Assembly (NCBI GenBank): GCA_965649825.1
Contig: OZ287715.1
Span: forward strand, 62,001 to 126,000
Origin: Penicillus capitatus
Taxonomy: Eukaryota > Plantae > Chlorophyta
Direction of reading: 5' to 3'
DNA: 64,000 nucleotides
The position numbers and the translations under genes are program-made. The notes beneath the pieces were generated by a model, which saw only the letters and a list, made by a program, of their open reading frames with translations, ran no database searches and was not told the DNA's origin. Shown piece by piece: positions 25,166 through 45,685 of the stretch. The stretch's first letter is position 1, and each line of letters opens with the position of its first letter.

Positions 25166-26401
25166 TTACATATCTGGATTCGAGAACGGAAAAATCAATG
25201 CCCGCTGTTTGAGAGTGTAATCCGCTTTCTTATCGGGAGACGACGTGTCAGGAATGCACGCAGCTGCAATGGCATGCGTAAATTCCTCTAAACTAAGGAG
25301 CCCATTGTTGCCTTTATCGGCAAAAAACAGGACACTCTCCAAATCACTGACGGACACATCCATACCAAACCTGCTCAGAAAGAATATTATGTATGGAAGA
25401 GTAGCGATGTGTGTACTGTTGGAAGAATGTCTTCCAATCTTTGATAGAAATCTGGCCGTCGCCGTCTGCATCCACCATTGCAAAGAACTCCTTGATCTCC
25501 TGCTCTGTTTTCTCTTTCTGATCATCATCCGTTTCTTTTGCTCGCCGTGGATAGCGTCTCTGAATGTAGCACCCTCTAGACTGTTTTGCCGGAAACTTCG
25601 TTCTTCCCTCCTTTACGAGTTCGTTCACAATTCTCATCACTTCTCGGCGATTGTCTTCACGTTTAGGGTATTTCTGACTGGCCAGTGTCATCAGTCCTGT
25701 CTCTGGGTCATACCTGTCGTTCCTCCGTGATGAACAGTAAAGAGCCAACGATGCGGACCTGTGTTCCACGATCTGAATAATGTGTTGGATGGCATCATCT
25801 GACAGGGAGTATTTTCTCTGCAGCTCTTTTATAAAGACGCGCATCTTCACGACCTTGTTCTTTGGATGCTCATAGTCTCCTTTGGTGAGGACATGATGCA
25901 CTTCCCAGCGAAAGATGCTCGGTGCTTTAGCTGAGATGACAACATATCTGTATCCGTTTTGAAGATTGAGATGTCTGTGTACTTCGAGATTCTGACAGCT
26001 GTACGAGCTCAGCCAGTTTTTCTGTCTGTTCCAAAGAGAGTTTTCGTTGCAGATGTGCGAATCCCGCATTGTTGGATTCAGGATAGAACTGAATGCCTGT
26101 CCGATCGATGTTGTGCGAGGAGACGTACTTTTCTCCTTTTTTCCCCAAGTGCACACCGACCCTGTCTAACTAAACACCCGCTCTCGTGTCTGTGCACGTC
26201 GTTCTCTACCTCGGCGTCCAGCGTTCCGCGCATGCCCAGATTACGCCGCTGTCGCTTGATCTCTTTTGGGTCTTCTTCTTCCAGAGATGTTTCAAAGAGG
26301 CCCAGAGGTACGTGGTTCTCTGGACCCGTGCAAAAACATCGACGCAGCACCTTTGGCCCGATCGAGCGACGAGTGATCCGCCTCAACATGAGTGCGTCCA
26401 T
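25166..26401 (-). CDS. MRPS35: Mitoribosomal small-subunit protein mS35 (MRP-S28 domain) fused to a C-terminal EF-hand pair
   Basis: Mitochondrial presequence-like MDALMLRRITRRSIGPKVLRRCFC; HPKNKVVKMRVFIKEL...IVEHRYDPETGLMTLASQKYPKREDNRREVMRIVNELVKEG; the same frame continues into DADGDGQISIKDW and, after one intron, DKGNNGLLSLEEF. Confidence 0.8.
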
Positions 26402-26743
26402 TAATGAAATGTATTGCATTTGGCTGTAGAGGGAATAGACCACGCGGGTAGACGGATATGTCGCCGAAGTAGGCAATCGTGACGCCGATCTCGCTCTTCT
26501 CTTCAAGGCGGCGAAGATACTTTTCGCGTGTTCGCTCTTCTATGTAGAAGAGCTGCATTGTTGACGTGAACAGTGTCCTCGGTTTTCGCACTTGGTATGT
26601 CGATTCCTCACACTTTGACATATCCGTTTCTTATCTCTTGTCCACTAGGTCAGACTTAAATTCTTTTGAGACATGACGGTTCATGTGGTTGACGCTTACA
26701 AGACGCTTAGCTGTTTAGGCGACAGGCATGCTTTCCTCGCAAC

Positions 26744-29099
26744 ATGAACGGTCGACGTGTTTGTTTTACACTTGCTCTTCTTTTCGTCGTCGCCCTCGGC
26801 AAGTTGGGTGAGAAAATCTCCTTGAATACGAAACGCCTGCTCGCGCCTCATGACCAGACAACAAGAATCTCCGTTTTCACCCCTGCACTTCGAGACACCC
26901 GTTTCTATGCACAAGAGGTGAACCTCCGTATTGCCGACTGACCCCGATGCAATTCGGCCGCGGTGTATGCCTTTGTTAAACGCGATGATTTTTTCCATTC
27001 ACTGTAGGAGCTAGGCATTATTTCGCTTAGAAGCCTTAAGCAAGTTAACACGAGAACGTGTTATTGGGATAAAGACAGTAAAGATTGCATGTTCAATGAC
27101 TTGGCATCCGAGCCGTTCCTCGACGTTGCAGATAATCCCATTGCCGACGACGCTAGCCGTTCCCTCGTTGGCTTCTCTTAGTCATTACACACATCGTCGG
27201 GACATGCATGGCTTTGCAGGAATGCTTCCGCATACGACAAGAGGATTCGTGTTCCGAGGTGGAATACTGTGAATGGTATGGCAGTTGCGCCGGAAACACT
27301 TTCCTAAAGCATCCGCTTTTCCAAGGCTTAATGGGTGGTGCGGCATTTCTACCGAATACTCTCGCAAATTCCATTCAGTGGACTGCATGAAAAAACTGCA
27401 GTTTGACGTTGACATGTATACTGGCAACCGAGAGTGTTACGCGAAGAATACAGAACTTGCCTGTAATGCCACTGGCATATGTTTCTGGTGAGTATGCCCT
27501 TCCAAACTCTCCCTAAAATATGTCACTGTCTAGGGTTGATGACTCTTGTTATTTCGATGAATGGTATTATTTCCATGGCATCCGAACCGATGAAAGTTTT
27601 ACACGAAGAGGAAGGTTTCCAGAAGGAGCTGTGGAGGTATGTTCACCCAGATCAACCGCATTTTGACATTCCTCTGCTGCAAGTTACTCGATGGGAGATT
27701 TAATTTAATGATTGATACCATTCAGAAGGCCATTAATGATGAAGAGATCACCACATGGAGCGCTGTTCTGGACTGGAAAGCACCGCCTGTTAACTGCCCT
27801 CCCTCCTATAAAGCAGTGGTATGAGCATCTCGTTTCTCTCTCGCTCTTCTGACTTCACACGATGCAGCTGTGCGACTACGTCGAAGCCTTCACACCATTC
27901 GTCGTCTATAATATTTATTGTTCTCATAGATATGAGTCGCTGGATCCTTCACTCTGCGAGAGAGATGCGTACTGCTCAGTAGACAGAGAAGATCCAACTC
28001 TTCCATGTATTCCTTCCATTGAGAAAGTGACACTGATCGCCCATCGCGCTGATTATGTGCGTTTTTCTTCACTTCTTGTTCTATGACGTATACTGAGTCA
28101 TTACACAAGGTATTTGCGGATGCAATCGAAGATCCTGAAGCCAGAGCCTTTGCGCGGAAGGCTCTCCAGTGTGAACACATATCCGATTCAGACAAATGCG
28201 AAGGTTTAGCCGAAGGCATTGGTTTCGCCCCATAGCATTCTTTTCATGTGTAGATGAGGATGATTGTACGTGGATCGATACTGATGGCAAATGCATCGTC
28301 TCAACAAAATGGACCGAGGACAAATTCTACAGCATTGTCGGAAAAAAGAAGGATCCAGTATGCCAATCGTATACTCTGGCTTCTCGGTACGGATGCGTCG
28401 ATCTCAAAGATGAAGAGGAGTGCCGCAAAAACCCAAGATGCTCCTACCATAAATCAACAGGTATGTATGTCTATTTATGATCTCTGCTGATCCCTCAACT
28501 TCTGTGATACAGAATCGTGCATCTTGGCATTTTCGGGAACGGTAGAATTCGCACTGTCTCTGTCGGGGGTTGATGACGCATATCGGTACGCTCGAAGCAC
28601 GTGTATGGATGCCACCACCTCGATGGACTGTCAGATAGCAAGTTCGCACGTCGACATACCGACGTCCGGGGATCTCTCCTCCGTTGCAAAGAATGCAGCT
28701 CAAATCAACGAAACCGAAGGAGAGACGGAGGCATCTCTTATTGCCGAGGCTCCAGATTCCATCGAAGGGTTGTCCGATGAATTCTTGGAGCTGAATGAAA
28801 ATCTGAAACACGACGAAGAGGAAGAAGACGACGATAAGATCAGACGTACATCTGCAGGAACATCCGACTCCGACGACAGCAATGACGATGCGACGGAGGG
28901 AGAGGGGGTATACGAAGTTTATAGCTCCGCCGCCAACACCGCCATCGCCATCGCCGGCGTCGAGGCTGAGGTCAAGACCACCGTCGCCGCTGCCGCCAGT
29001 GCCGCTGACATAGTCGCAGGCGCCGGTGGCGGCGGCGACGACTACGACATATTCACAGGCGGCGACGACGATGACGCGACGTGGTCAGTATGGGGATAA
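26744..29099 (+). CDS. Secreted-type Cys-rich repeat pre-pro-protein, paralog B, Asp/Glu/Ala/Gly-rich tail
   Basis: Signal-peptide-like MNGRRVCFTLALLFVVALG; LRSLK motif; modules collinear with paralog A (e.g. KKKDPVCQSYTLASRYGCVDLKDEEECRKNPRCSY versus KEKDPVCQYFVLNVEYGCVDLEDKEDCAEQARCFY). Confidence 0.75.
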
Positions 29100-29414
29100 G
29101 AATATTATTATGACGACTAAAACCGACCGAATACATACAGAATGAGAGAGAGTCTGATAGAAAGTCATGGAGATAGGTGTTCTGCAAGAGAAGTTTTCGC
29201 CATCTGAGAACTTCGATCTCTATCTGCTGTCGTTTCTTGGCCGTTTTGCGCGCCTAGTGCTTCTCTGTTTGTTCTCCGAACGCATTATCTTTGCAATTCG
29301 TGATGGGAGCTGTCGTCTGTGTCTGTGAATTCGAATGTATGTAATAATGAACCTTTCATGAGTTAAAGGCGAGTATCGATTCTTCAGCCGCCGTTGCGTA
29401 GCGAACTGAGAAAG

Positions 29415-29864
29415 ATGGCAGAACAGACCTTTATCATGATCAAGCCCGATGGCGTTCAGCGCGGACTCGTCGGAAAAATCATCAAGCGCTTCGAACAACG
29501 TGGCTACTTCCTACGCGGACTCAAGATGATGACAGTCGAGAAGGCTTTCGCCGAGACGCATTACAAGGACTTGGCTTCGAAGCCATTCTTCCCCGACCTC
29601 ATTGCCTACATCACTAGCGGCCCTGTCGTGGCAATGGTATGGGAGGGAAAAGATGCAACATCGCAAGGACGCAGGATGCTGGGCAAGACAAACCCTCTAG
29701 ATTCGGATCCCGGCACAATCCGTGGAGATTTCTCTTTGATCATGGGACGCAATATCATTCATGGCTCGGATGGAGTGGAGAGTGCCAAGGCGGAGATTGC
29801 GCTCTGGTTTCCGGAAGGACTCAACGAATACGCACACCATTCAAAGGATTGGATTTATGAATAG
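29415..29864 (+). CDS. NDK1: Nucleoside diphosphate kinase, cytosolic type, intronless
   Basis: [18 protein letters not shown]...PGTIRGDF...[22 protein letters not shown], with the catalytic His motif. Confidence 0.98.
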
Positions 29865-29955
29865 AGAGACGATCTACTTACAGCAACAGGCACTTCATTG
29901 TTTGGATGTTCAGCAGATACAGTACTGAATTCCGTTTAACCCATTAGGCTGCTGT

Positions 29956-30822
29956 CTACTCCCCCGATCGCCGCTCGAGTGTAATGATATCCCTTGACTC
30001 TTGCAATGTCAGAGAAGTGAGCACCCAGGACAATACATCAGAGGCAGCGCGGATGTAATCTGCCAGCCATGACAGGGATCGATATCAAGAAGGATCGATG
30101 GGTGGTTTTGGACTTTGGCGTTCGATGACAGGTCCCTGATTGGATACCGTCAGATCAGATGCGCGTAGCAGGAGACGCATGAGATCCTGAAACGAAGCTT
30201 TCTCTCCATCGAATGCGCGATAGTATTCCGAGTAGGTGTTTTGCAAACGCATATAGGCACTCAGTAGTTTGCGCTCATACTTACCAACCAATCGCACATG
30301 GGCCAGACGTCGCAGAGAGGACGTCGGGATAGCAGAAAGCATATCTGGCTTCTGCCTGGCATTCTCACACATGAGTCGAATCTCGACGAGCAAAGCATCG
30401 ACTACCGTGCGAGATTGAGAATGGCCTTCTTCTTTTCTGTATACTCTTGTGCTTCGTTGAGGTTTGTCGCACGAACATACATGCCATTCTGTAGCATGTA
30501 TTGAGACAAGAGCTTCCATTGATCGACAAAGGGGAGATAATTGTATCGCATGTTGCTCTCCCCCGTCACTCGGTTGTCTTTTCGAAGAGCCTGTATGCAT
30601 CCTGCACAAAATACAGTTAAGTCGTATGCAGTGTATAGGCGTCGACGCATGGATCGTCATGGATATCCTACGTGATGGAAAGCGACATCGCTCAATGCGC
30701 TGCAGCCTGAGGCCTCGTACCGCATGTCGACGTCGTCCGCGCAAAAGATGACGGAGACGAAGGAGAGGTCGAGGCACGACGTTTGGCAACGTAAACGTTT
30801 GACCAGACAGTAGTCCATTCAT
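29956..30822 (-). CDS. Organelle-targeted protein resembling the conserved non-zinc-finger domain of plant OZ1/OZ2/VAR3; no RanBP2 finger
   Basis: Arg/Leu-rich transit-peptide-like start. Spliced core FVDQWKLLSQYMLQNGMY...EYTEKKKAILNLARQKPDMLSAIPTSSLRRLA...ERKLLSAYMRL...KASFQDLMRLLL aligns by eye with remembered plant OZ-family blocks (WPEW..LMERL; ACLNFGKDRFDILRSL; DRKVV; ARTIDLMRIL). Three GT-AG introns. Confidence 0.6.
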
Positions 30823-30924
30823 TTCGTCACCCTGATGGGCCGTTACGTAATAATGATCATCTATAAGAGCCTAACGTTGGCGTTTGTGGGTGAATTCGAC
30901 TATCTGCCTTTTCGTTGTTCGGAC

Positions 30925-33153
30925 ATGATGCAGTCGAGCAAGACCTTAGGCAGGACTACCATCTCAACGCGATTGGCGCCAATTCGGCCTCGTACTGTCT
31001 GGCGGCCAACAAGGATCGTCTGCCGTGCCACATCACACCAGGTCCATATCCCGATGTCCCTCGGTACTTGAACCCGCATCCTGTTCTGTTCTGTCATAGA
31101 CGGAGAGTGCAACGCAATGGGCGTCGCTGATACCTGCCGCAGCGCTGGCAGCTCTGGTTTCAGCCACGCCGGTGCAGGCTGCGGATTATACGGCTCCTCC
31201 ACCTCAGGTTCAACAAACGGAGCCGCGTCGTGCGATCGAGACGTACACGGCACCCTCGACGGCGCCGACCGAATTTGTTTTCCCGGAGTCGACACAGTGG
31301 CGCTACTCAGAACTGATTAACGCCGTCGAGGCAGGAAAAGTGGAACGGGTCCGTTTTGCGAAGGATGGTTCGCAGTTGCAGCTCACAGCAGTCGATGGTA
31401 GACGTGCTCTCGTGACGTTGCCCAACGACCCAGAACTCGTGGATATTCTCGCCAAGAACGGCGTGGACATCTCTGTGGCCGAAGGAGAGCCGCAGGGCAA
31501 CTTTGTCTCTCTTCTGGGAAACCTACTCTTCCCTCTGTTGGCCTTTGGCGGTCTCTTCTTGTTATTTCGCAGTGGATCTGGGTCGAACGAATCTGGAGCT
31601 GGTGGAATGGGTCCCCTAGGTGGACCGGGCAACCCGCTGGACTTTGGTCGAAACAAGTCCAAATTTCAGGAGGTTCCGGATACAGGCGTGAAATTTGCAG
31701 ATGTCGCTGTAAGGCCACCTCTCTGCCACTCTGACATCGACATGGATGTTTGATGCCGTAGGGTGTAGATAATGCAAAGTTGGAGCTTCAGGAAGTGGTG
31801 GATTTCTTGAAGAACCCTGACAAGTACACCCGTCTGGGCGCCAAGATTCCCAAGGGCGTTTTGCTGGTCGGCCCGCCTGGAACAGGAAAGACACTCATTG
31901 CCAAGGCCGTGGCTGGTGAGGCAGGCACGCCCTTCTTCTCCTGTGCCGCTTCGGAGTTTGTGGAGCTGTTTGTGGGAGTGGGCGCCTCCCGTGTGCGCGA
32001 TCTCTTTGCCAAGGCCAAGAGCAAGGCACCATGCATCGTGTTCATCGACGAAATCGATGCCGTGGGTCGTCAGCGTGGTGCAGGAATGGGCGGCGGTAAT
32101 GATGAACGCGAGCAGACCATCAATCAGCTGCTGACAGAGATGGATGGCTTCGAAGGCAACACAGCCGTCATTGTGCTGGCAGCCACCAATCGCCCAGATG
32201 TATTGGATCCTGCTTTGTTGCGTCCTGGACGCTTTGATCGACAAGTAACCGTCGACCGACCAGATGTGCAAGGACGCATTGCTATTCTCAAAGTACATTC
32301 CAAAGGAAAGACCTTGGGCAAAGACGTCGATCTGGATAAAATTGCCAGACGGACACCAGGATTCACAGGAGCCGATTTACAGAATCTGATGAACGAGGCC
32401 GCCATCTTGGCAGCAAGAAGAGATCTGAAAGAGATTTCGAAGGAGGAAGTGGCCGATGCGCTGGAGCGAATCATTGCGGGACCTGAGAAGAAGAACGCCG
32501 TCATGTCTGATAAGAAGAAGAGTCTGGTGTCTTATCACGAAGCGGGTCATGCATTGGTCGGTGCTCTGATGCCGGAATACGATCCGGTCACCAAGATCTC
32601 CATCATTCCCCGCGGTCCTGCCGGCGGCGTGACGTTCTTTGCTCCGAGCGAAGATCGATTGGAATCGGGTCTGTACAGCCGCTCCTATTTGGAGAATCAA
32701 CTGGCTGTTGCCTTGGGCGGTCGCATCGCTGAGGAATTGATCTTCGGAGAGGACGACATTACCACAGGTGCCTCGAGCGATTTCCAACAGGTGACCCGAA
32801 TCGCACGCATGATGGTGACGCAAGTCGGCCTCAGCGACAAGATGGGTCAGATTGCATGGACACAGAGCGGTCCTTCTTTTTTGGGCAGCCAGATTGCTCA
32901 GCCGGGAGAATTCTCGATGCAGACAGCAAGCGAGATCGATGACGAAGTGAAGAGTCTTGTGGAACGTGCCTATCGTCGAGCCAAAGATCTCATCCAGAGC
33001 AACATGAATCTTCTGCACAAGACAGCCGAGATGCTCATAGAGAAGGAGGTTGTGGACGGAGACGAGTTTGAGAAGCTCGTCATCGAATCCAAGGCGGAGC
33101 AGTATCTGAAGAAGGACGCTCCAAATGTCACCATTCCCTATCAGGCTGTCTGA
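30925..33153 (+). CDS. FTSH1: Thylakoid FtsH ATP-dependent Zn metalloprotease, type A (FtsH1/5)
   Basis: Transit peptide; [25 protein letters not shown]; Walker A GPPGTGKT; Walker B IVFIDEID; HEAGH zinc motif. Two introns. Confidence 0.97.
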
Positions 33154-33225
33154 CCTTATCAGCCAACCCTTTGCTGCCCACCATTGACGATTCTTCATTA
33201 TTGATCGACGGATGGTTCTGGTTTT

Positions 33226-33230
33226 TGTAA
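33226..33230 (+). promoter_or_regulatory. TGTAA putative polyadenylation signal after FtsH, 13 bp before the next ATG
   Basis: UGUAA is the established main poly(A) signal in Chlamydomonas and many chlorophytes. Here it lies 72 bp after the FtsH stop. Confidence 0.55.
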
Positions 33231-33243
33231 ACGACGAGCGCGC

Positions 33244-34392
33244 ATGAGTGAGCCAACGAAACCGCGTCGACCCAGCAGCGACATACACCGCGTCGCTCGG
33301 CTGTCTTTCCTCATCGCTGTCTGCCTTCTTGGTTTTCTCTATGGCAATCATTTCGTGAGGATTGCAACGGCACCGACTCTGAACAAGGTCATTGGAGAGA
33401 CGCATCGAGTGATGACGGCGTTCACTGAAGAAGAGATCCCTTCGATTCGACCCGGCCCTCAGAAAAAAGCAGGAATGGTACCAGAGGTTTACTGGAGACG
33501 CGATAAATCGAACATTCGAAAGGAGTTGTTTGAGACGTGGCTCTTTCGCTATATCCATCACAACATCCTTGTGCATCCCGCTGTGCCCTACCCGACCTGT
33601 CAAGTCTATATCAATCACGAATACAAATTCATCTGGATCAAGGGACACAAAGTGGGCAGTACGGCGTTAAGGGAGCCACTGGGATGGCTATGTGATGATC
33701 ACTGGAAGATTCCATCCGATGCCAAGTTCGATCATTGTAGTCACGCCTTGTGGCGTCAGACTGTGACGACAGATGACGTGCTAAAGTACTGGAGAGAGTA
33801 TTTTGTCTTTGGTGTCGTTCGAAATCCCTACGATCGATTTGCAAGTGCCTTTGAGTATATAAAAACGAGCAGGAGCTCCGGACCGTGCGAGAAAGTGATT
33901 CAGAGGCTGTCCTTCGACAACGTATGCCACGATCCCTACCTCCACACGCTTCACTGTGCCCTCGGGCAATGCTGGTGTTCGACGCATCACTTTCGTCATT
34001 TCATGCCTCAGGCTCCCTGTCTCCTAACAGAGTCCCTTCTGCCAGCGGTCGATTACTTGGCAGATATATCGACGTTGGATGCCGATCTGGAATCGATTCT
34101 GGAAAACATCAATGCACGGAGAGACAAATCCCTGCCGCCGCTTGAGATAAACAAAGAACGTTTTACTCATGTCAATGCTCACGGAAATGGCAATAGCACA
34201 TCTGTTGCCAAACAACTGCTTTTGGAAGAAGAGGATCGAGTGGTCCCGAAAAAAGATCAGCCGCCTGAGTACGTTCAGCAGCTTTACCAGCAGAATCCTC
34301 AATGCTTGGAACGTGTCGCGCATTTTTTCCACCAAGACTTCGTGTTACTAGGATACGACAAAGGTAGTCGTGGGGAGTCACTGGACCGTTAG
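33244..34392 (+). CDS. Golgi-type carbohydrate sulfotransferase (Sulfotransfer_2 family), intronless
   Basis: N-terminal type II TM (LSFLIAVCLLGFLYG); 5'-PSB motif FIWIKGHKVGST; 3'-PB motif FVFGVVRNPYDRFASAFEY; terminal FFHQDFVLLGY. Confidence 0.85.
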   Translation: MSEPTKPRRPSSDIHRVARLSFLIAVCLLGFLYGNHFVRIATAPTLNKVIGETHRVMTAFTEEEIPSIRPGPQKKAGMVPEVYWRRDKSNIRKELFETWLFRYIHHNILVHPAVPYPTCQVYINHEYKFIWIKGHKVGSTALREPLGWLCDDHWKIPSDAKFDHCSHALWRQTVTTDDVLKYWREYFVFGVVRNPYDRFASAFEYIKTSRSSGPCEKVIQRLSFDNVCHDPYLHTLHCALGQCWCSTHHFRHFMPQAPCLLTESLLPAVDYLADISTLDADLESILENINARRDKSLPPLEINKERFTHVNAHGNGNSTSVAKQLLLEEEDRVVPKKDQPPEYVQQLYQQNPQCLERVAHFFHQDFVLLGYDKGSRGESLDR

Positions 34393-34404
34393 TGGTACTG
34401 TTCA

Positions 34405-34409
34405 TGTAA
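34405..34409 (+). promoter_or_regulatory. TGTAA putative polyadenylation signal in the 18-bp spacer, 1 bp before the next ATG
   Basis: Spacer sequence tggtactgttcaTGTAAc followed directly by ATG. Confidence 0.5.
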
Positions 34410-34410
34410 C

Positions 34411-35322
34411 ATGCGTATTATATTGCAATCCGTTGCGTGTTTCTTCTGCGCCTGTCTGTTAGGGACACTAAGCCATTGGGTGTTTGTCGACAAGGGCGAG
34501 AGCACCACGCGTCCACTCTTTGCCCCGAGCGCCTTACACGGCACGGAACTCGAGAAAGAGGGTCCCATTTCTCTGATGCGATGGCTCGAAACGTACAGCT
34601 TTTCCGACAAGACAGCCTTTCCAGTTTTGGATCGGCTCGTTCCCAAAACGGATGTGATGCTCGGTACGCAGTGCGCCAGCCATGTCCAGTACGAAGAGCG
34701 GCTGGTATGGGTCTCTGATGAAGGATCGCCATTTGGCATATTTTCACCCGACATGGAATCTCGCCTCCTGGAATCGTGGCTCCTGACGCTGCGTAACGTC
34801 GAAGATGTCGCGTATGGTTGGAAAGTCTCTCTCGTGTTTAGCGTCGTCTGGAATCCTTACGTGCGATTTGCGGCAGCCTACGAGCGTTTCAGGCAACATC
34901 TGAAAGAGGAGGAGAATGAAGTGCCCATATCTTTCTCGCAATTTTGTACCCGGCCCCTGTCCCTTTGCGAAGACTACGACGCGGATGTGTGTTGGGACAC
35001 TATCCAGGCAGCACCCTCTTATGCCATGGCACAGACCCTCTGTACATTCAATGAGAATATGCATCCGAGCGTTGACTTCGTGCTGGATGCTGCGAAGCTG
35101 ATGGACAACAGCAATGTGCCTGCCTCGTGGAAGAATTTTCTGAGCAAAGAAATGATCAATGAGCTGCAGTTGCGGTTTCGGGAGATCGGCAAAGAGCATC
35201 GATGGATTGAAGAGAAGGCCGAACGCCTTTATCGCGAGAATCCAAGCTGTTTGCAGACGGTCTACGAATTCTACCATGCAGATTTTTTGCTACTGAAGTA
35301 CCCTAAACTGACGTTGTTTTAA
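34411..35322 (+). CDS. Sulfotransferase-like paralog with degenerate PAPS-binding motifs, intronless
   Basis: N-terminal hydrophobic anchor; LVFSVVWNPYVRFAAAYE (3'-PB remnant); terminal FYHADFLLLKY. No KxxST motif at the expected position. Confidence 0.7.
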   Translation: MRIILQSVACFFCACLLGTLSHWVFVDKGESTTRPLFAPSALHGTELEKEGPISLMRWLETYSFSDKTAFPVLDRLVPKTDVMLGTQCASHVQYEERLVWVSDEGSPFGIFSPDMESRLLESWLLTLRNVEDVAYGWKVSLVFSVVWNPYVRFAAAYERFRQHLKEEENEVPISFSQFCTRPLSLCEDYDADVCWDTIQAAPSYAMAQTLCTFNENMHPSVDFVLDAAKLMDNSNVPASWKNFLSKEMINELQLRFREIGKEHRWIEEKAERLYRENPSCLQTVYEFYHADFLLLKYPKLTLF

Positions 35323-35346
35323 GTCCCTATCAAACGATTGTGCGAG

Positions 35347-36681
35347 ATGTCCACCACTGCCACCACACTGTCGTGGATTCTTCCAGGACGGTCGACATGT
35401 CGAAGACCGGCGCTGTCGCGGTTACGACGACGGAGTGGATCGTCGGAAGGGACGACGCGGCTGTGTTCTGTATCGCCGAGGCGACGCTTTGCTCCGGAAG
35501 CCCGTCGGGAAGTGTGGGCAGCCGGTTCGAATTCGGCAGCATCATTCGATCTCGTGCCCACCTCCCCACAGAATCATTCCTCGACAGCCAATGGTGCTTC
35601 TCCACGCTGTTCAATATAACTCGGCAGGAATGTGCGAGGTCGCCTGTGATGGGCGGCGTGTTCGTGGATGTAGTCTTTGTCCAGATGTGGTATCATCTGC
35701 GCGCTATCTGCTTCTGTATGGTGACGTTTGGCCTGTCTGCTCTGTTGTTCACACTCATGATTCTTATGGCGCCTCTTGTCTTTATATTCGACAGAAACAG
35801 GTCCATCCCTGTGGCTCTATGTCAAAGGAATGGAAACGACTGACGCGCTTTCTGTGGATAGACGCAGTTTGTATGCTCATATCAACACGCTTTGGGCCAA
35901 ACTCTCTCTTGCTCTTTTCTGTAACGTCAAGGTCACTGTCTTGTTTTATCTCTTGGCAGTTGCGAGTGGATGTTGTGAATAGGTGGAAGGCACAGAACAT
36001 TTGGCGAAGGAAACGGAACCAGCTGTCTACGTTGCCAATCATCAAAGCTTTATGGTCTGCTAATACCCTTCGATCGTCGATTGGATTCGACAACGAAGAC
36101 GGTGTGCGTGCAGGATATTTTCGCTCTGTTCTTCCTGAATCGGCCGATCAAGTTTATTTCGAAGAGCAGCGTTTTCCTCTTCCCCTTCCTCGGATGGAGC
36201 ATGTTTCTGACAGGTATGTCCTCGACGGATCCATTGCTTTGGTGTTTAAACACAAGAGCTTATGTTGCCGGACAGGTCACATCCAGCTGAACAGAATCGA
36301 TCGTCGCAGTCAGTTGAAATGTCTGAAAGATTGTCAAGCCATGCTTGAGAAGCGAGTTCCCGTTGTCTTCTTCCCTGAAGGAACGCGAAGTTCAGACAAA
36401 AAGATGCTGCCCTTCAAGAAAGGCGCCTTCACGATTGCTGCGAAAACGGACGCCCCTGTCATTCCCATCACGATCAACGGAACAGGTCTGCCACGAATCT
36501 ATGCACAATTTGGAGATCTTGGACGTCTTCAGGCGACGTCATGCCCAAAGGCAGAGAACTGGAATTGCGCCACGGCAGCATTCGTGTCATCGTTCATCCG
36601 AGAATCGATTCTAGAGGACGCAATCCTTCAGAACTCTGCCAGGAAGCACAGGAAATGGTCGCATCATCTTTGATTATGTAA
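35347..36681 (+). CDS. LPAT1: Plastid 1-acyl-sn-glycerol-3-phosphate acyltransferase (LPAAT/PlsC)
   Basis: Transit-peptide-like start; PAVYVANHQSF...DIF; IKFISKSSVFLFPFLGWSMFLTGH; VVFFPEGTRS; PFKKGAF; VIPITINGTG. Confidence 0.92.
36677..36681 (+). promoter_or_regulatory. TGTAA putative poly(A) signal overlapping the LPAAT stop codon
   Basis: att aTG TAA. The same arrangement occurs on the minus strand at 25166-25170, the stop of the mS35 gene. Confidence 0.45.
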
Positions 36682-36743
36682 TCTATCCATCTGACGGTGC
36701 ATTTTGCCGGTGCCATTCGAAGAGACGAACGACATCATCCGCG

Positions 36744-39686
36744 ATGGCGACGCAAGAAGAGGATCTGGCATCGTTCTTAGCCATTGGACTGGTGGAAACA
36801 ACGGCAAAGTGTGTCTCTCTGTTGGAAAGTGTATAGTCGACAGCAGAATGCCATCGTAGAAATGCTCTGAAAAATCAAAAGTTCTGTTCCGCATTGAAAG
36901 AGGTGATCAATGAAGCCGATGTCCAGTCCGGTTGTCCAAAACAGATGGGCAGCCTGCTCTACACTCTGGCAGCCAGGGCAAGGCGACGAAACGTCACATC
37001 TTCAACAAAGCTGAAGGATAGATGTTGTGCAGTGTCCAGCCAAGGCGTTGTCACATCGCAAGAAAGTGGCTGTTTATATCAAGGATGAAAAGATTAAGGT
37101 ATCAACGACAGAACGATGCAGCCTGCAAACGTCTCAATTCTGCGCAGAGTAATGCCCAATTGGACGGAGGATTGGACTATCTCAAGAGCCTCGGTGACGC
37201 CGAGTTTGACATGGAAAGCTTTGAGAAGGCAGCTGGTGTTGGTGTTGAAGTAATGCCATCCTAGACATGTCTGTCTTTGTTCAAAACGAGCGACGGTCTG
37301 CTGCTCTCTAGATCGGTGAGGATGAAATCAAGGAAGCCATTCAAGCAGTCATCTATTCCGAGAAGGAACGTCTTGTACAAGAAAGGTAGAGATCGTCGCA
37401 CAGCGACCGTCTCCTGGTGTGTGGTGTGACGGATTCAATGTTCTGGCAGGTACTTAGTAAACATGAATCAATTGATGGGCCGAGTCATTCAGACTTTGAA
37501 GTTTGCTGATGGGCCATTAGTGAAGCGCCTGTTTGAGGAAGAGGTCACGAAATTGCTCGGGCCAAAAACAGAGGCAGATCTGAATGCCAAACCCACAAAG
37601 AAGAAGAAGACCAAAGCTGCAAAAGCAAAGGATGCACCAGACGCTGCGCAGATATCAGAAGAGAACGGTACGTTGACGGAAGGAGAAACGGCAGATCCCT
37701 ATGCCTTCTTCGCAAAGCCCGAAGAGAATCATCAAGTGCATACCACCGTGCATTTCAGTAACGGAGAGAAGATGCATATCTCGAACTCGGAGGATCAACT
37801 CAAGGCGCACTTAGCCGCCACAGGCGGAAAATACTACACGCGATTTCCGCCCGAACCGAATGGCTATCTGCATATTGGCCATGCCAAGGTGAATGGGATA
37901 TCCCGTCAGCTGATCTGCGATGGAATGGACTTGACTTCAGGCAATGTTCATCGATTTCGGATTGGCAGAGAGATACGATGGTCGATGTTACTTGAGATAC
38001 GATGACACCAATCCCGAAGCGGAGAAACTCGAATACATTACACATATCCAAGAGATTGTGTCATGGATGGGATGGAAACCGTGGAAAGTGTGTCAAAGCA
38101 TACATCCACTGTGCAAATGACGGATGCGGTACCATGACTCTTAGGTGACCTATTCAAGCGACTATTTCGATCAGCTGCACAAGCTGGCCGTCAAGATGAT
38201 CGAGTCGGGTCATGCTTACGTCTGTCATCAGACGCCTGACGAAATCAAAGATCATCGCAAAGAGCTCAAGCCAAGTCCTTGGCGCGATCGTCCTGCCTCC
38301 GAGTCGCTGAGGCTCTTTGAGGATATGCGTCGGGGTTTGGTGGATGAAGGAGAGGCGACGCTTCGTATGAGACAGGATCCGAAGAACGAGAATCCGAACA
38401 TGTATGACCTCATTGCGTATCGAGTGAAATTCACAAGGCATCCTCACGTGGGAGACAAATGGTGCATCTATCCATCATATGACTTCACACACTGTGTGGT
38501 GGATGCTTTGGAGAACATCTCACACTCTCTCTGCACCCTGGAGTTTGAGACCCGTCGCATTTCCTACTACTGGTGTGCCTTTTTCCGTTCTATGATGGGT
38601 AAAGGGAGTGACCTTCGATGTTGGCGATCAGGCTGTTAGAAGTGCTCGGGCTGTACAAGCCAGTGGAGTTTGAGTATTCTCGACTGACCATTACGTACAA
38701 CGTGCTTTCGAAGCGGAAACTGAAGGCGTTGGTGATGGGTGGTCATGTGCGGGGATGGGATGATCCGCGTCTCTACACACTGGCTGGACTCCGCCGTCGC
38801 GGTGTGACACCTGCTGCCATTAACAGCTTTTGTCGCGAGATGGGCATCACACGTTCGGATAACGACATCCCCGTTCACCGATTTGAATATCACATACGCC
38901 AAGATCTGGATCTCAACTCGCCAAGAACCATGGCCGTTCTAAGACCTCTAAAAGTCACACGCGTCTTTCTTTGTTATCTGATTCTGAAAGCGTGTGTGGC
39001 CATACTCAGATTCTGATTACAAACATGAAAGATGATCACGCGGAGACAGTCAAAGGAAGACGCTTCCCAGGAAGGAATGAAGATTCCTATGATCTTCCCT
39101 TTGGTAAAATCATCTTCATCGAAGAAACAGATTTCAGAGATGCAGACGAAAAGGGTTACTTTGGACTGGCACCCGGAAAGTCTGTCATGCTGCGGTGGGT
39201 TACTTTGAGATGGGAATCTGTTTTAATGGACTGCTGTGTGTTAGGTATGCTTATCCCATTACATGTCAGTCTGTAGTGAGAGAAGAAGGAACAGGAAGAA
39301 TCCTTCATCTGGAATGTACATACGATGCCGATTTCCATTCCTCTGGACGCAAACCACCAAAGGGCGTGCTCAACTGGATCTGCCAACCTCCAGCATCGTT
39401 ACCTCAGCCCATCAAGATGGAAGCACGTCTGTATGGACTGCTCTTCACATGTGAATCGCCGGGAGATATCCAAGAGGATGCATGGATCGAGGCGATCAAT
39501 CCGGAATCCGAGGTCGTTGTCAGTGGAGTGCTCGGAAATCCGAGTCTCCGAGAGACCAAAGCTGGCGATCGATATCAGTTTGAGAGACTCGGTTACTTCT
39601 GTGTCGATCCGGAATCCACTTCAGATCTTCTTATTGTGAACAGAACCGTAACTCTGAAGGATTCTTTGCCGAAGTCCTTGAAATAG
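36744..39686 (+). CDS. QARS1: Glutaminyl-tRNA synthetase, eukaryotic type with N-terminal extension
   Basis: [17 protein letters not shown] (HIGH motif), [58 protein letters not shown]. Confidence 0.97.
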
Positions 39687-39762
39687 CAGCTGTTGTTGTT
39701 GAGTATGGATGACACATGTAACAGAAAGGCGTTACGCGTGTTCAGTCGAGTACGACACAGCG

Positions 39763-40842
39763 ATGCTGCGACTCTTTCGATCTCAGTGTCCTTTGCTGCG
39801 ACGAGACGTTTTCGCAGGACTTGCGGCGGCCCAAGCCAAATGTTCACACGTTCAGCGGTGTCTTTTTGCCACGGGAGACAACGGTACATAGAAATGATCA
39901 CAAAAGAAGGCACCCTTTACGAAAATACATTGTGTAGAGAGTGGAGAAGAGGATAGTGCCGTGGCCGGCGAGGCAGCTAACGAGGTAGCTGGCGAGGTTG
40001 CCGAATCTATTCCATCCGTTTCACCACCGCCACCAACTTCCACAGATGCGCAGAACGATCAGCATGAAGGCGACAAGAAGGAAGCCTCGTTCGTCGATGA
40101 TGAAGACATTGAGAAGGCTGTGCTGGAATCGCAGACGGCCTCTCCGGATGAGACCGCTTCTCCATTCGAGAGCGGTTTTCCATTGAATTCTCCCCTGACA
40201 AGGAAAGAGGACAGTTCCGATTCGATTTTAAAACGGGATCAGTTTTTGAAAAATCTCTTCGAAAAGCGGAAGTCCCTTGCCAAATCTAACAACGAGGCGT
40301 CTGATGATGAGGAAGAGAAAGATGCCGACAAGAAAGAGAGTCCAATTGACGTAGATACAGGATTTGCGGAACTAGGCGGATTTTCCACGCAAAGTGTAAC
40401 AGGACTAGTGCTCGACGAAGATCCAATGCGAATCCACCCGCGTCGATACTTTCAGCCAGGGCAGACGTATCAGCCAGAGGTCCGCCAAACACACTTCCCT
40501 TGCAAATGGGCATCTTTGGAATGCTAACAGGAGCTGCATCCCTTTGGTGCTTATCGAGAAAAACGTTTGCCGTCGAAAAGTCGAACCATTCGAGACTCCT
40601 ACGCTGAAGATGACATCAAAGACAAGCTCAGCTTTAAGAATCTCTCGTTATTGAACAACTACTTGTCGGATGCTGGATTGATTCTGCCGAGAAGAATTAC
40701 CCGACTTTCAAAGAAAGTGCAGACGAAACTCGAACGAAGTGTGAAAACTGCCCAGGCGTTGGCTCTGCTGCCTGTCTTGGATCGAAGGGAAGAATTCAAA
40801 AGAAGGACGCGGAGAGTGTCCGAAAAGGATCTTATTTCTTAA
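39763..40842 (+). CDS. MRPS18: Mitochondrial ribosomal protein bS18m with acidic N-terminal extension
   Basis: Presequence-like MLRLFRSQCPLLRR; S18 core LSFKNLSLLNNYLSDAGLILPRRITRLSKKVQTKLERSVKTAQALALLP. Two introns. Confidence 0.85.
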
Positions 40843-40997
40843 GAGGAACGATCTGTTTTGCCAGCAGCCTTTCTCTTTTCCCTCAACCATGCAGCTCGTT
40901 CTCTCCACGATGTGGTCTTCTGACTCTGAACAATATGTTCCGCAATTAAGGGCTTTGAGGTCTCTACAGATCAATCTCAGTGAAACTGGGCATCGTC

Positions 40998-41634
40998 TTA
41001 CTTAACGCGATTGGACACACCCTCTTTTTCAACAGGGTTATTCCCGCCTGTGACCGCTGTCTCCGCTTCTGGACGATCCGACGTGGCTGACATTGTCGTG
41101 GTCAGTGCGCCGAAGATTGCATCCTGTCGGTGCGTGAAACGGCTGTGCCGCTTTGAGAAGATGAAAGAACCTCGTGCGATGACTTGATGTTGTCAAGACA
41201 AGACATCGGCAGGGGATCGTCATCGTCCATCCATTCTTCCATCTGTCGAGGTCTCTGTTCCAGTTGCTTTACTGCACCATATCTTTGTTCCAAGTACCTG
41301 TTGAGCACGCATAGCATCCTTGAGAGATGCCTTCATGAAGAAATGGCCAGGCGGACTTTGTCTTGGCTTTCAGTTTCTCCAAGGGCGTCATCTTGTCATA
41401 TCCCTTGATGGCAGAGCTGAAGTCCATCCCTCTTGTGCTGGGACTCGTCCATTTCACTTTCGGCCTTCTCTCATGCGTCAACGCATTTCCTTCTCTCTTG
41501 GTGCCTTCGATTCGAGATTCCTTTCTTTGTTTCGTCGCCCTTGGCTTCTCAGAACCGCGAACGGGTTTTCTTTTCTTGTCATTCTCTCCATCGTTCCGTT
41601 GCCCTTCACGGGAAGATTCGGCGATACGTTTCAT
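40998..41634 (-). CDS. Small basic low-complexity nuclear-type protein (RSRC1-like motif)
   Basis: Arg/Lys/Glu-rich start; GYDKMTPLEKLKAKTK; spliced HEDAIFG motif. Two GT-AG introns give an open frame to TAA at 40998. Confidence 0.45.
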
Positions 41635-41691
41635 ACGACGACGACGACAGATATTGTTGTCATTTCACGCCACAGTCGTCGTGCTTCCAAA

Positions 41692-42789
41692 ATGCAAAGG
41701 GGAATGTCGCACAGGAAGAAGGACAAATCGTCGAGGAGTACCACTCCCGAACGTCCGAGAAATCGAACGTACGCCGTACCTATGCCCCTACTTCGCGTTC
41801 GTCTAACCATACCTCTGATATGCAGAGCTGCGTCGTCGAAAGATACGAAGAAGGTGAGGCACTCGGACAACGATCCGGCGCCTTCTCTGGTATCGGGAAC
41901 GCAGATCCCGCGTGGGAACGTATCGATCGGGACGTCTATCAGAGGAACGGATCCTGGTCGCAAGAAACAGCTTCCGTCTTCCGATGTCGCCGATGTTCTG
42001 TTCCGAATCAAAATGTGCATCACCCAGTGGAAATTGATGAACAAGAAGATCGAGATCGCTTTGCAGAAGAGGAAGAAAAAAGTAAGAAGGCGCTGAAGGT
42101 TGTTGCATCGTCCTTTCCACTATCTCTTAGGCCGTAACTGATATTCGATGCGCTACACTCGCCCTCGTCCAGAAACAGGGGGTCATTACAGAGCTGCAGT
42201 CCCGTGTGGATAAAGCTAAGTTTCGAGAGAGGACGGCACATGTTCATGAACAACTGGATCAACTCATCTTTGCTTTTGGAGACATACAGGTCAAAACAGA
42301 TATCGCCTTGAATGCGATGCTATGGTAGAATGGGCGTGTTCGATGCAGGGAGAGTTGAAAGAGAACGCTCAGATTCTGAAACAAGCGATATTGTCTACAA
42401 TGGAGCAGATTCCTTTGGTGGACGGCGCCGTATTGGGTGACGCAATGTGTCCGGACGTTACTGCCTTCTGTAATGTGCTGCAAGAGACGCTTGCCTCTCT
42501 GGAGCGATGCTCCCGCGTGCTAAACAGGTTCATTGTGCCATCGAATACATCGCCTATGAGACGGTCCGTCATTCGAAGCCCAAGTCCACGAAGATCTCCG
42601 TCTCCGGGCCCGACACCCTTGCAGAGACTGAAGATAGCCGTCCGAGCTGGACAAGAACTGGACACGGTCGTGCAAAAGGAAGTGAAGCTGATGAAAGAGG
42701 TTGCGTCTTTGCTGGAAATGAAGCACAAGAAACAGTTGCATCTGAATTCCACGAGAGCCTATCGTATGCGAGTTAAATCCAAACATTGA
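41692..42789 (+). CDS. QWRF-domain / augmin subunit 8 (AUG8)-like microtubule protein
   Basis: RIKMCITQWKLMN corresponds to the QWRF motif, followed by a helical region and IPLVDGAVLGD (compare LPVxxGAxAD). Ser/Arg-rich N-terminus. Confidence 0.65.
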
Positions 42790-42809
42790 GCCTTAGAAAG
42801 ATAAGGGGC

Positions 42810-44040
42810 TCATTGTTGCAAGAGTCCTTGACTTTGAAGCACACTATGGACTGCTGCCGACAGTGGAGACTCCGTGTCGTTGTACAGTTTGACCAGTACT
42901 TTAGCAGAGAGTGCTCCGATGGATGCTTCTTCCTCAGAGCCGCTCTAAGATTCCTGACGTCAGTGTGTTTAATGAAGGTAATCGCTCACTTTTCGCATTT
43001 TGGGATGCGAACTGCACAGACAGATGCCATAGAGTGCCTGTAGAGATGTTCCCTCCGATGCCTCTAGCGCATGAACGTAGTAGGTCTGGGCAGTCGTGAT
43101 GTCTTGCACTGTGCCGATCGTATACAACGTATCTGCATAACGTAGATGGTACGTTAGATGTGACGGCGCCAACAGTAATAGCTCTTCATAGCAATGCGCT
43201 GCCTGCTTGTACATTTGCATCTGCAGGCAATGCACACACAAGAGTGAGATTGAGTGAGATCCGGAGGAGATCTCGACACCTTCAAGTAGATTTCTGCCAG
43301 TTCCTCCCATGCGTCGCGGTCCATCATGAATGTGTCCAAGTATGTGTTTAGCGTCTGCGCAGCGGCGACTAGGTCTCCACGCGTCTTGCAAATTGCCACC
43401 TGTAAGCAGGATCTCAGATCATTACAGAAATGGGATTGAGCGACACCCACTTTGCGTTTGAGAATGATATCATTGGATGGGTCTTCAGACAGAATGTCAT
43501 CATAGGTACTTTCAGCACGAGACAGGTTCCCTGTGGACTCAAACTGCATCGCCTGTGCTACCACAGCAGTACGGTCACACGATCTTGACCGTCAGCATTG
43601 TGCCACAGACTTTTAGGCGCTTTGCCCGAATGCTCTTGGGGAATTCATTGCAGATCGCATTGACACAGGCTTGGGCACACCCGTTCGCCTGAATATCCAT
43701 GCACGCCAATGCCACTTGCTCATAGACTAACCACACTGCAGAAAAACATAAATAGATGCGAAACAGGTAGGGCCGCGGACATTCTTCGGCACTGAGTTTG
43801 CCTTTGTGCTTTTGCAGGAGCAAGGACCCATACTTCGCCACAGGTTCGCTCTCCCTTGTTCGAAGCTCACGGACCTACAGAGTATTCTCTCATGCCCAAT
43901 GCATCCGTTGTAGAAAAGTCGTTCACGAGTTTCAGATACCGACGGATAGAATCCGGAGCAGGTCCCGAGGCACCTGCGCCATCCAGTTCTGCGATCAGCT
44001 GCTTTTTCTCTCGCGACGCATCCATTAGTACAGATGACAT
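42810..44040 (-). CDS. EMC2: ER membrane protein complex subunit 2 (TPR)
   Basis: WLVYEQVALACMD; FPKSIRAKRLKAMQFES; LNTYLDTFMMDRDAWEELAEIY; YKQAAHCYEELLLLAP; HLRYADTLYTIG; ALYGICLC. Confidence 0.92.
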
Positions 44041-44097
44041 GATCAACAGGCGCTGTCGTCAAACCATAAACAGAGTCTAGGGATCAATTGGCAAAGC

Positions 44098-44994
44098 ATG
44101 GAAACCAAAGGGCACGACACCGGGGCCATGACTGCTCCCGTTCCTGTTCCGGAAATGTCACGCAACGCTTTGGACACCCTCGAGGCACTCGATGCCGTGG
44201 CGATTCGTCAAGACCTCCAGTGGCTGGAAGAAATAGTCACCTGCTGCGAACTGAAGAACAAGTATAAAATCTCGACCATTCCTATCGGCCAAGAGAATCG
44301 CAACTTTACCGATACGGAGCTCCTCCAACTGCCGATGATTTTTGATGTTCGTGAAGACTCGACGCTCTGCTGCAGACTCTGCTGCTACAACAGCAGAGAA
44401 CTCAAACTCGGCCTCTTTCCACCAGGAATCGCTCAGAAGCCAAGATGGCCCAGCATGGAGCCTCTGTTGACGCTGGATCGTCCTTTTAGATGTACCTGCT
44501 GGTGTGGCCGCCTCTACTGTCCACAGGAAATGTCTGTCTCCGCCGAGGGGCGTCGTTTGGGTCACGTGGAACAGGACTGTCGCTGTATCGATTGCTGTTG
44601 TTCTTGCACTCTCTGGATGAAGAGCTTCGATGCCAATGGCAATCCTGTCCATGCATTTAGGAGTCCACTCTGTGGTCAGTGATCTCCACATCTAAACCCT
44701 CTTCCATTTACTGTGTGCCTCTTTTCAGGAAAGAACTGTTGTGCTCCTTCTTGCTGCAACGAGGTCTTCGAGATTGATATCCTCAATCCCTGGGATGAGC
44801 AGCAACAGACGGGGACGTTTAGGAATATATGGCCTGGATGGAATTGGCGAGGTATCTGTTCACCGAGCGTTTCCAATTTTGTCGCGGTGTTCCCTCGCAA
44901 CGCTTCCAAAGAAGAGAAGGCCTTACTCATCGGATCTCTCTTTTTGCACGACTTCTTCTTGTTCGAAAAGAATGGAGATGATAGTGGTAGCTAA
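44098..44994 (+). CDS. Phospholipid scramblase (PLSCR) family protein, copy 1
   Basis: VREDSTLCCRLCC...RE; LTLDRPFRCTCWC...CPQEMSV; LGHVEQ; KEEKALLIGSLFLHDF. One intron at about 44677-44728. Confidence 0.88.
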
Positions 44995-45655
44995 AAAGTT
45001 AAAGAGATTCGCATTGTTTGTTTGTACACACATGTCATGGATGATCATCTGCCACCAACCCACTGCCGGGTTTCATTCACTCTTGCACTGAGTCCATTGT
45101 TTTCTGTTTTTTTTCGTTCTGTTCCTTCATAAATGCAAATTATCGTTCAAAGATCGTATCAGACATCCCATGTCCTATCCTTGTGATAGCTGTTGTTCAG
45201 ACATCAGAACCGATAAGTTGATGTAATGCCCGCCCTTCATGCTGCAGAATACTTGTGTGTTATGCCGATCGATAAAGCCAGCTGGCTCATGAGGCAAAAA
45301 TGGTCCATGAGGAGAATTGAAATGGATAGTTGGTCGGCAGTCAGCTGATGGAAGAAGTTCAGTGGCCGATTTTTCTAAGTTGTCGCCTTTCGGCAAATCT
45401 GCTGATGCATTGACAGCGAATATTGTAGCCAATTCGCTTCCCTCATCCCCATTCGTTCTGTTTACATTCCACCAGTGAAGAGTGATTAAAGCAGCAACAT
45501 AAACCAGAGCCGAATGAACAGTCAGTCGAGTGTCCTTTATCTAGCAACCGCTTGGACAATGTAATACTTTTGCGAGACAGCTAAATTGCGCGCGGTGTCC
45601 TGTCAAAGGCCGACCTTGAATCCAGAAGTTACGTTTTATAGATTTTGTTGACGGT

Positions 45656-45685
45656 CAAAAGCGAAGTTCATCCACTTCGCTTTTG
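45656..45685. repeat. Perfect 11-bp inverted repeat (hairpin with 8-nt loop)
   Basis: caaaagcgaag-ttcatcca-cttcgcttttg. Confidence 0.8.

Follow-up and report, generated by a model that had tools for sequence, protein, structure and literature searches.

In the compacted genomes of microsporidia and nucleomorphs, the expression of neighboring genes overlaps (Williams et al. 2005, PNAS 102:10936, as cited in PMC6009652). Green algae also have nuclear loci that yield polycistronic mRNAs (Gallaher et al. 2021). Here we analyze a run of six closely spaced genes in a 64,000-nucleotide stretch of DNA (contig OZ287715.1, positions 62,001 to 126,000; “the window” below). They encode an FtsH protease, two sulfotransferases (ST1 and ST2), an acyltransferase (LPAAT), a glutaminyl-tRNA synthetase (GlnRS), and a ribosomal protein of the S18 family (bS18m). 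An original prediction, made from the sequence, had described them as an operon-like chain that might be co-transcribed and had named, as a fallback, single-gene mRNAs whose 3' ends would each border on the start of the next gene. The sequence evidence favors the fallback: the six genes are probably separate RNA polymerase II units of a very compact genome, in which 3' ends would abut or overlap the next 5' end, and not an operon.

In chlorophytes, ulvophytes included, the polyadenylation (poly(A)) signal is UGUAA, whose position peaks 17 nt ahead of the cleavage site, and the hexamer UGUAAU is common in Acetabularia (PMC1868727). In algal polycistronic loci the upstream gene lacks UGUAA, the upstream open reading frame (ORF) has a median length of 444-600 nt, and the coding sequence comes to about 1.5 kb; polycistronic pairs lie 212-260 nt apart, compared with a median distance of more than 3 kb for co-linear pairs in model green algae (PMC7896298). 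Loci that are translated by leaky scanning have a weak start context at the first ORF and few AUGs before the second (PMC11291117). As for gene density, there are 1.6 kb per gene in the densest alga of one comparison and 3.2 in Caulerpa lentillifera (PMC6476727).

The chain resembles the genomes of microsporidia, nucleomorphs, and compact prasinophytes (Ostreococcus) in that spacers are tens of bases or less whatever the orientation of the genes, neighbors are unrelated, and 3'-end signals lie beside or inside the neighboring gene, overlap being in our case inferred from sequence. We take Ostreococcus to be the densest alga of the comparison above. Unlike those cases, the chain belongs to what appears to be a bryopsidalean alga and not to a parasite, an endosymbiont remnant, or a picoplankter. 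It also keeps 20 introns of 47-65 nt each in six genes, and compaction is uneven, with divergent regions of at least 400 bp and a sparser-looking stretch at 45-52 kb. At about 1.65 kb per gene, the chain is close to the densest alga and denser than C. lentillifera (PMC6476727).

Results

Six genes on one strand, conserved in a sister genome

Gene models rebuilt from the sequence gave the same six genes on the + strand as the original prediction had listed, and all five of its stop-to-ATG distances were reproduced (Table 1). Its gene names agree with the Pfam assignments, and its reading of the sequence as green-algal and nuclear held. Coding sequence accounts for 86.0% of the chain, introns for 11.3%, and spacers for 2.7%, and the ORFs of 2,118, 1,149, 912, 990, 2,388, and 975 nt sum to 8,532 nt. 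The products have unrelated functions, which favors separate units: FtsH is a plastid-type protease, ST1 and ST2 are sulfotransferases, LPAAT is an acyltransferase, GlnRS is a tRNA synthetase, and bS18m is a ribosomal protein. Their compartments likely differ.

Table 1. Coordinates of the genes, spacers, and signals discussed in the text (positions within the window).
Feature	Position	Strand	Details
TATA-like TATAAGAG	30862-30869	+	56-63 nt 5' of FtsH ATG; conserved in the sister genome
FtsH protease, chloroplast-type, 705 aa	30925-33153	+	exons 30925-31041, 31100-31708, 31762-33153; clean ORF
FtsH-ST1 spacer, 90 bp	33154-33243	+	TGTAA 33226-33230
Predicted FtsH cleavage	~33243	+	base preceding ST1 ATG
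ST1, 382 aa, single exon, N-terminal membrane anchor	33244-34392	+	Sulfotransfer_2 (PF03567), carbohydrate sulfotransferase-type
ST1-ST2 spacer, 18 bp	34393-34410	+	TGTAA 34405-34409, one base ahead of ST2 ATG
Predicted ST1 cleavage	~34422	+	11 nt within ST2 coding sequence
ST2, 303 aa, single exon	34411-35322	+	divergent tandem paralog of ST1, lineage-restricted
ST2-LPAAT spacer, 24 bp	35323-35346	+	sole junction without TGTAA
LPAAT, 329 aa, 7 exons, transit-peptide-like N terminus	35347-36681	+	PF01553; first intron 35609-35673
LPAAT-GlnRS spacer, 62 bp	36682-36743	+	
Predicted LPAAT cleavage	~36694	+	~50 nt ahead of GlnRS ATG
GlnRS, cytosolic glutaminyl-tRNA synthetase, 795 aa, 11 exons	36744-39686	+	clean ORF; tRNA-synt_1c domains
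GlnRS-bS18m spacer, 76 bp	39687-39762	+	TGTAA 39717-39721
Predicted GlnRS cleavage	~39734	+	~29 nt ahead of bS18m ATG
bS18m, ribosomal protein S18 family, 324 aa, 3 exons	39763-40842	+	clean ORF; introns kept in the sister genome
Convergent gene, function unassigned	40839-41192 (terminal exon 40839-40963)	-	last two exons supported by the sister genome

The window was matched to a 308.9-kb ENA metagenome contig, ERZ25074695. For comparison we used a 4.08-Mb contig (L004, ERZ26696514, “the sister genome” below) from a different ENA assembly and a different species, which is collinear with two blocks of the window, 21993-26457 and 29125-45294, and about 86% identical to them in nucleotides. The whole chain is kept there in unchanged order, its spacers measuring 88, 34 (21 if aligned to the stop position of the window), 24, 58, and 88 bp. 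Over the six genes, identity is 93.3, 94.7, and 78.4% at codon positions 1, 2, and 3, and 73% across introns, all 20 of which have retained their GT/GC-AG ends. Start and stop codons are all conserved except the ST1 stop, which is displaced by a few codons. The FtsH-ST1 spacer is 71% identical, with a conserved TTTTTGTAAA block, and the ST1-ST2 and ST2-LPAAT spacers agree at 18 of 18 and 23 of 24 bases.

FtsH carries the AAA and Peptidase_M41 domains of Pfam, and both of its introns are present in the sister genome. ST1 has orthologs there and in a second relative (L002, described below). ST2 is 28% identical to ST1 (E=1e-16), and its PF03567 match is weak and under the family cut-off; only one homolog was found among 5.8 billion proteins, that of the sister genome, to which ST2 is 90.6% identical at codon positions 1 and 2 versus 77.6% at position 3. 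LPAAT is presumably plastid-type, a label that draws on its transit-peptide-like N terminus and on motifs of ATS2/LPAT1. The N terminus of GlnRS aligns with homologs from residue 1; its GC-AG intron at 36978-37032 (donor GCAAGG) is still GC-AG in the sister genome. PF01084 was assigned on the sister ortholog of bS18m, and the mitochondrial label of this protein, which is the reading of the original prediction, is putative.

The start of LPAAT was initially ambiguous between ATG 35347 (24-bp spacer) and ATG 35397 (74-bp spacer). The latter was rejected, its frame having a stop in the sister genome. The ORF that opens at ATG 35347 is uninterrupted in either species, and both frame-shifting indels between them sit within the 65-nt GT-AG first intron. 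The start of LPAAT is therefore ATG 35347. Exon 1 (35347-35608), which encodes the transit-peptide-like region, is about 90% identical in nucleotides to its sister counterpart, and the mismatches between the two are not periodic by codon position (5/6/6 in the first 178 nt, 35347-35524); third positions of LPAAT are the most conserved among the six genes (85%). This pattern may reflect an extra constraint at the nucleotide level beside the 24-bp junction. A further side observation concerns a 423-aa ORF on the - strand (32377-33648), which runs opposite the last part of FtsH and the first part of ST1. It is probably a by-product of codon usage, as conservation by codon position favors the sense genes.

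Could the short spacers be an artefact, with a collapsed or chimeric metagenome assembly or mis-assigned starts hiding longer ones? The match of the window to a metagenome contig and the initial doubt over the LPAAT start would fit such an explanation. However, the gene order and similar distances recur in an independent assembly of another species (about 86% nucleotide identity), start and stop codons are conserved with the one exception given above, the LPAAT start is settled, and GlnRS aligns from its first residue. The chain is therefore real, given that the sister assembly supports both models and spacing, and we regard an artefact as extremely improbable. A fusion by stop-codon read-through was rejected as well: although the lengths of the first three spacers (90, 18, and 24 nt) are divisible by three, there is an extra in-frame stop in the first, and the sister distances of 88 and 34 are out of frame.

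Conserved poly(A) signals at four of the five junctions

As the original prediction had stated, TGTAA occurs at four of the five junctions (33226, 34405, 36677, and 39717). There are seven copies on the sense strand of the chain, three of them in spacers and one over the LPAAT stop codon (36677-36681). All four junction copies are conserved in the sister genome, compared with the three genic copies, two of which are not conserved while the third is a splice donor. The density of four per 285 nt of junction versus three per 9,633 nt of genic sense strand amounts to a ~45-fold enrichment (Fisher p=2e-5; Poisson p=1.8e-5 against the window rate). In the window as a whole the pentamer is depleted, with 40 and 27 copies per strand versus ~65 expected on each, and its commonest form is TGTAAT. 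A pentamer enrichment near ORF ends was dropped as confounded, any stop-containing word being enriched there.

The signals lie 0-72 nt past the stop codons of FtsH, ST1, LPAAT, and GlnRS. We predicted cleavage sites by applying the -17 spacing rule of PMC1868727 to the TGTAA positions (Table 1). The signal is 13 nt ahead of the ST1 ATG and 1 nt ahead of that of ST2, and in the GlnRS-bS18m spacer three ATGs lie 5' of TGTAA and none between it and the start codon. Placed in this way, the 3'-end signals would make transcripts reach into the neighboring gene, a feature of compact genomes. Conserved TGTAA was also found past the stops of convergent genes, namely PP4R3 (minus-strand copy at 12170-12174, 26 nt past its stop), NDK (two + strand copies) and its partner, and an EF-hand gene and its partner. 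At those sites TGTAA is therefore not a promoter element of a downstream gene.

One possibility for the origin of such short spacers is a true nuclear operon, in which a single transcript would run from the FtsH promoter through all six genes and be either polycistronic or cut at each UGUAA. The spacers are indeed below the size for conventional promoters, and polycistronic nuclear mRNAs do occur in green algae (PMC7896298). The reasoning of the original prediction that the gaps are too short for a separate 3' untranslated region (UTR), promoter, and 5' UTR is thus upheld, although a co-transcribed chain is not. The chain shares with algal polycistronic loci its chlorophyte nuclear setting, its closely spaced co-oriented ORFs, the UGUAA signal itself, and, at ST2-LPAAT, the lack of that signal on the upstream gene. 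Elsewhere, however, the upstream genes hold conserved poly(A) signals, which are missing on the upstream genes of published algal polycistrons (PMC7896298). The chain has six long ORFs (912-2,388 nt, 8.5 kb in total) where those loci have two or three short ones (median upstream ORF 444-600 nt, ~1.5 kb in total). Its spacers are also below their published median of 212-260 nt. The five upstream ORFs contain 31, 18, 24, 17, and 56 ATGs, which equals the codon-shuffled expectation and shows no depletion. Since the upstream ORFs are long and hold 17-56 ATGs, leaky scanning cannot serve the downstream ORFs. Of the five features that define polycistronic loci in green algae, the chain lacks four, and the fifth is a spanning transcript. 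We consider an operon very unlikely.

The same slim chance covers a variant in which the cut mRNAs would gain their 5' ends in another way, for example by spliced-leader trans-splicing. The spliced-leader operons of kinetoplastids, nematodes, and tunicates are like the chain in their co-oriented unrelated genes, spacers of ~100 bp, and 3' ends adjoining the next 5' end. They are unlike it in that the ST1-ST2 spacer has no AG acceptor past the stop codon and in that convergent neighbors are just as tight. Spliced leaders are not known from green algae, and spliced-leader trans-splicing is not known in Chlorophyta, which also counts against an operon.

No TGTAA is found at the ST2-LPAAT junction, the next + strand copy that is conserved in the sister genome being that of LPAAT at 36677. 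It could be speculated that ST2 and LPAAT alone form a bicistron of the green-algal type and that the other junctions divide ordinary single-gene units. The lack of a signal at this junction only and the near-invariance of the 24-bp spacer and of the coding ends on either side of it, at equal distance in both species, would be consistent with this. ST2, however, is 912 nt long and holds 24 ATGs, which would prevent scanning ribosomes from arriving at the start of LPAAT, and its own start context (AAC ATG C, A at -3) is not obviously weak, judged without a genome-specific consensus. Moreover, ST2 is a duplicate of ST1 that is young and restricted to this lineage, which makes the adjacency recent, and a read-through ST2 mRNA with LPAAT as untranslated 3' sequence, accompanied by a separate LPAAT mRNA, explains the same facts. 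We therefore regard a bicistron at this junction as unlikely.

Tight packing irrespective of orientation

Runs of at least six genes on the same strand arise in about 36% of random 30-gene orders, and co-orientation alone is not beyond chance. The spacers of the chain are far shorter than those of model green algae, yet they match other junctions of the window, convergent ones included, where the baseline is a handful of curated neighbor pairs. Short distances are found irrespective of orientation: tandem genes are 18-90 bp apart, one convergent pair overlaps by 2 nt, and another is separated by 53 bp.

The first of these convergent pairs lies at the end of the chain. The bS18m stop (40840-40842) overlaps the stop of a minus-strand gene (40841-40839) by 2 nt within a palindromic CTTAAG, and this arrangement is kept in the sister genome. 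The minus-strand gene differs from its sister counterpart by 2/1/8 mismatches by codon position, shares 41 of 43 residues with it, and has a conserved 57-nt GT-AG intron (40964-41020). No TGTAA was found nearby for either partner, and on the + strand there is none for 1.6 kb after bS18m. In the second pair, the stops of Vps39 (+, 12145-12147) and PP4R3 (-, 12201-12203) are 53 bp apart, and PP4R3 cleavage is predicted ~10 nt from the Vps39 stop. In a further convergent pair, 220 bp apart, the poly(A) signals of both strands are interleaved. Convergent pairs are just as tight as the chain, and co-transcription cannot explain such pairs, which argues against an operon.

In two convergent spacers, 29865-30084 and 25155-25343, conserved TGTAA is present on both strands, each copy near the stop of the other gene. 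This implies that the predicted 3' UTRs overlap in antisense.

A rough count gives ~30 genes for the 64 kb of the window, in which the 45-52 kb stretch has a lower GC content and looks sparser. Two sets of ORFs with scramblase domains (44038-48288, +) are probably tandem paralogs; the second set lies in this gene-poorer-looking stretch, at ~45-48% GC. Another segment, 26457-29125 (~2.2-2.7 kb), is missing from both the sister genome and the second relative. It contains a 202-aa ORF (28491-29096, +) that scores well as coding sequence but matches no Pfam family, and a search around the segment for mobile-element ends or terminal repeats gave nothing convincing.

Two methods of gene finding were abandoned. 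A home-made ab initio finder (codon bias, splice matrices, and dynamic programming, with a conservation term added later) fused neighbors, including the whole chain, since both codon bias and splice signals are weak here and the spacers resemble introns. A frame-specific conservation scan was dropped because of excessive noise at 86% identity.

Gene order in relatives

The presence of the entire chain in the sister genome, with the two shortest spacers near-invariant, could be taken as support for an operon. Its order, however, is split in the second relative (Logan SRR33785046, FtsH 92% identical), where ~4.7 kb (11387-16084) separate FtsH from the ST1 ortholog, both of them intact, and where no ST2, LPAAT, or GlnRS was found within 4 kb past ST1. 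The insertion carries NACHT-domain and adaptin-like ORFs, with more NACHT/NB-ARC ORFs downstream; the spacers of this relative are longer and AT-richer, with no TGTAA after FtsH and ST1.

In C. lentillifera, the only adjacency seen is that of GlnRS and S18, on the same strand. Model g1324.t1 (1,029 aa), attributed to this species because its numbering matches the Caulerpa set (EukProt EP00210 series), is like the chain in having a GlnRS ortholog (73%) followed by S18 and unlike it in having this pair only. It joins the two proteins and omits the GlnRS stop, the spacer, and the S18 N terminus; the fusion is probably an annotation artefact of tight spacing. FtsH is model g1350 in this species, 26 models from g1324 as judged by model numbering. 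Model g1324.t1 also shows that the adjacency of GlnRS and S18 is older than the split from Caulerpa.

In Bryopsis and Ostreobium, the neighbors of FtsH and GlnRS are unrelated to those of the chain, which is absent. The order of the chain is evolutionarily labile, and its colinearity is limited to close relatives, in contrast to the colinearity of polycistronic loci across distant chlorophytes. Taken together, the conserved TGTAA at four of five junctions, the long ATG-rich ORFs, the labile order, and the tight convergent pairs speak against the operon-like, co-transcribed chain of the original prediction.

Protein identities point to a bryopsidalean affinity nearer Caulerpa than Bryopsis or Ostreobium, as judged by the best matches of two proteins. 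FtsH is 89% identical to that of C. lentillifera (g1350.t1), 87% to Bryopsis, and 85% to Ostreobium and chlorophycean algae. GlnRS is 73% identical to EukProt g1324.t1; the values are 65% for Bryopsis, 64% for Ostreobium, and no more than 61% for other classes. No full-length FtsH or GlnRS product of 100% identity is on record. A scan for the GlnRS C-terminal exon in a collection of metagenome contigs (JGI, the Joint Genome Institute, and other public assemblies) returned only apparently bacterial GlnRS of at most 49% identity. Finally, a metatranscriptome contig from a third relative (L003, FtsH 94% identical) ends 134 nt past the FtsH stop with no downstream ORF.

Promoter evidence

The region upstream of FtsH, which is divergent from a minus-strand gene, measures at least 400 bp and is the only sizeable intergenic region of the chain. 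The TATA-like TATAAGAG within it is a candidate promoter element of FtsH. That the sole sizeable, TATA-like-bearing upstream region precedes the first gene is what an operon would lead one to expect; on the other reading, FtsH simply has an ordinary upstream region, as befits a separate unit. No Rfam family was matched in the window, outside which spliced-leader genes might lie, however, and no unusual RNA structure was found in the six junction regions (fold z-scores -1.2 to +1.7), both of which count against that reading. No tRNA was found in the window either.

GTAATAATGA occurs at 30850-30861 and 29340-29351, ~65-85 nt 5' of the FtsH and NDK start codons, and its core AATAATGA is present in reverse orientation at 33196-33206, ~40-50 nt 5' of ST1. 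All copies are conserved in the sister genome, and a shared promoter element is possible.

In the first 120 nt of the downstream genes, synonymous-site identity was marginally higher (83.5%, p=0.048). An attempt to divide the FtsH-ST1 spacer into a 3' part and a promoter part by means of the insertion in the second relative failed, as the flanks could not be aligned.

Discussion

We propose that the chain consists of separate transcription units whose intergenic DNA has shrunk so far that the 3' end of each gene and the 5' end of its successor would use the same few dozen bases. FtsH, ST1, LPAAT, and GlnRS would each terminate at their own UGUAA signal. Since the predicted upstream mRNA ends at or near the next ATG, the downstream genes would start transcription within or upstream of the spacer and have a very short 5' UTR. 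Their promoter elements would then lie in the 3' UTR or the coding end of the upstream gene, so that an upstream 3' UTR might double as downstream core promoter and 5' UTR, and neighboring transcripts would either abut or have up to tens of bases in common.

The junctions would differ in detail. At FtsH-ST1 and ST1-ST2, where the signal is less than 20 nt from the next ATG, the two mRNAs would have to overlap. At LPAAT-GlnRS and GlnRS-bS18m, with the signal 40-67 nt away, a short 5' UTR would fit past the cleavage site. ST2 and bS18m probably have non-canonical ends or run on, in sense into LPAAT and in antisense into the convergent gene, respectively; a downstream ORF on such read-through RNA would not be translated.

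Several points weigh against separate units. The transcript ends, start sites, and overlaps proposed here derive from sequence signals, and none was observed. Two of the six genes, ST2 and bS18m, lack TGTAA, which leaves their 3'-end formation unexplained. No TGTAA follows FtsH within 450 nt in the second relative or within 134 nt in the third, and its use may vary within the group. The last 120 nt of the upstream coding sequences showed no excess of synonymous-site conservation (75.5% versus 77.4% in interiors, p=0.54), in a test that rests on one pairwise comparison with the sister genome and has little power. The conservation of the two short spacers (100% for 18 bp and 96% for 24 bp) fits a dense array of signals and would equally fit a processing site.

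Another possibility is that cleavage and polyadenylation at UGUAA are coupled to starting or maturing the next mRNA, either on a processed six-gene transcript or by termination-coupled re-initiation. To this we give only a small chance. If true, it would be a nuclear operon-like organization of long unrelated green-algal genes, unlike the bicistrons that depend on leaky scanning.

Separate, abutting units, the explanation that we favor, would require no new mode of gene expression, and the arrangement would work like known compacted eukaryotic genomes. The tight spacing also calls for caution in automatic annotation: gene finders fuse tight neighbors, as in g1324.t1 and in our own ab initio finder on the chain, and gene counts and apparent fusion proteins in such genomes need care. 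If the picture drawn here is right, a relative of giant-celled siphonous seaweeds would have nuclear packing close to that of picoplankton, with poly(A) signals as little as one base ahead of the following start codon and with convergent genes whose stop codons share bases. Such a genome would offer a natural case for the study of minimal promoters, termination, and overlapping transcription in the green lineage where intergenic DNA is lacking.

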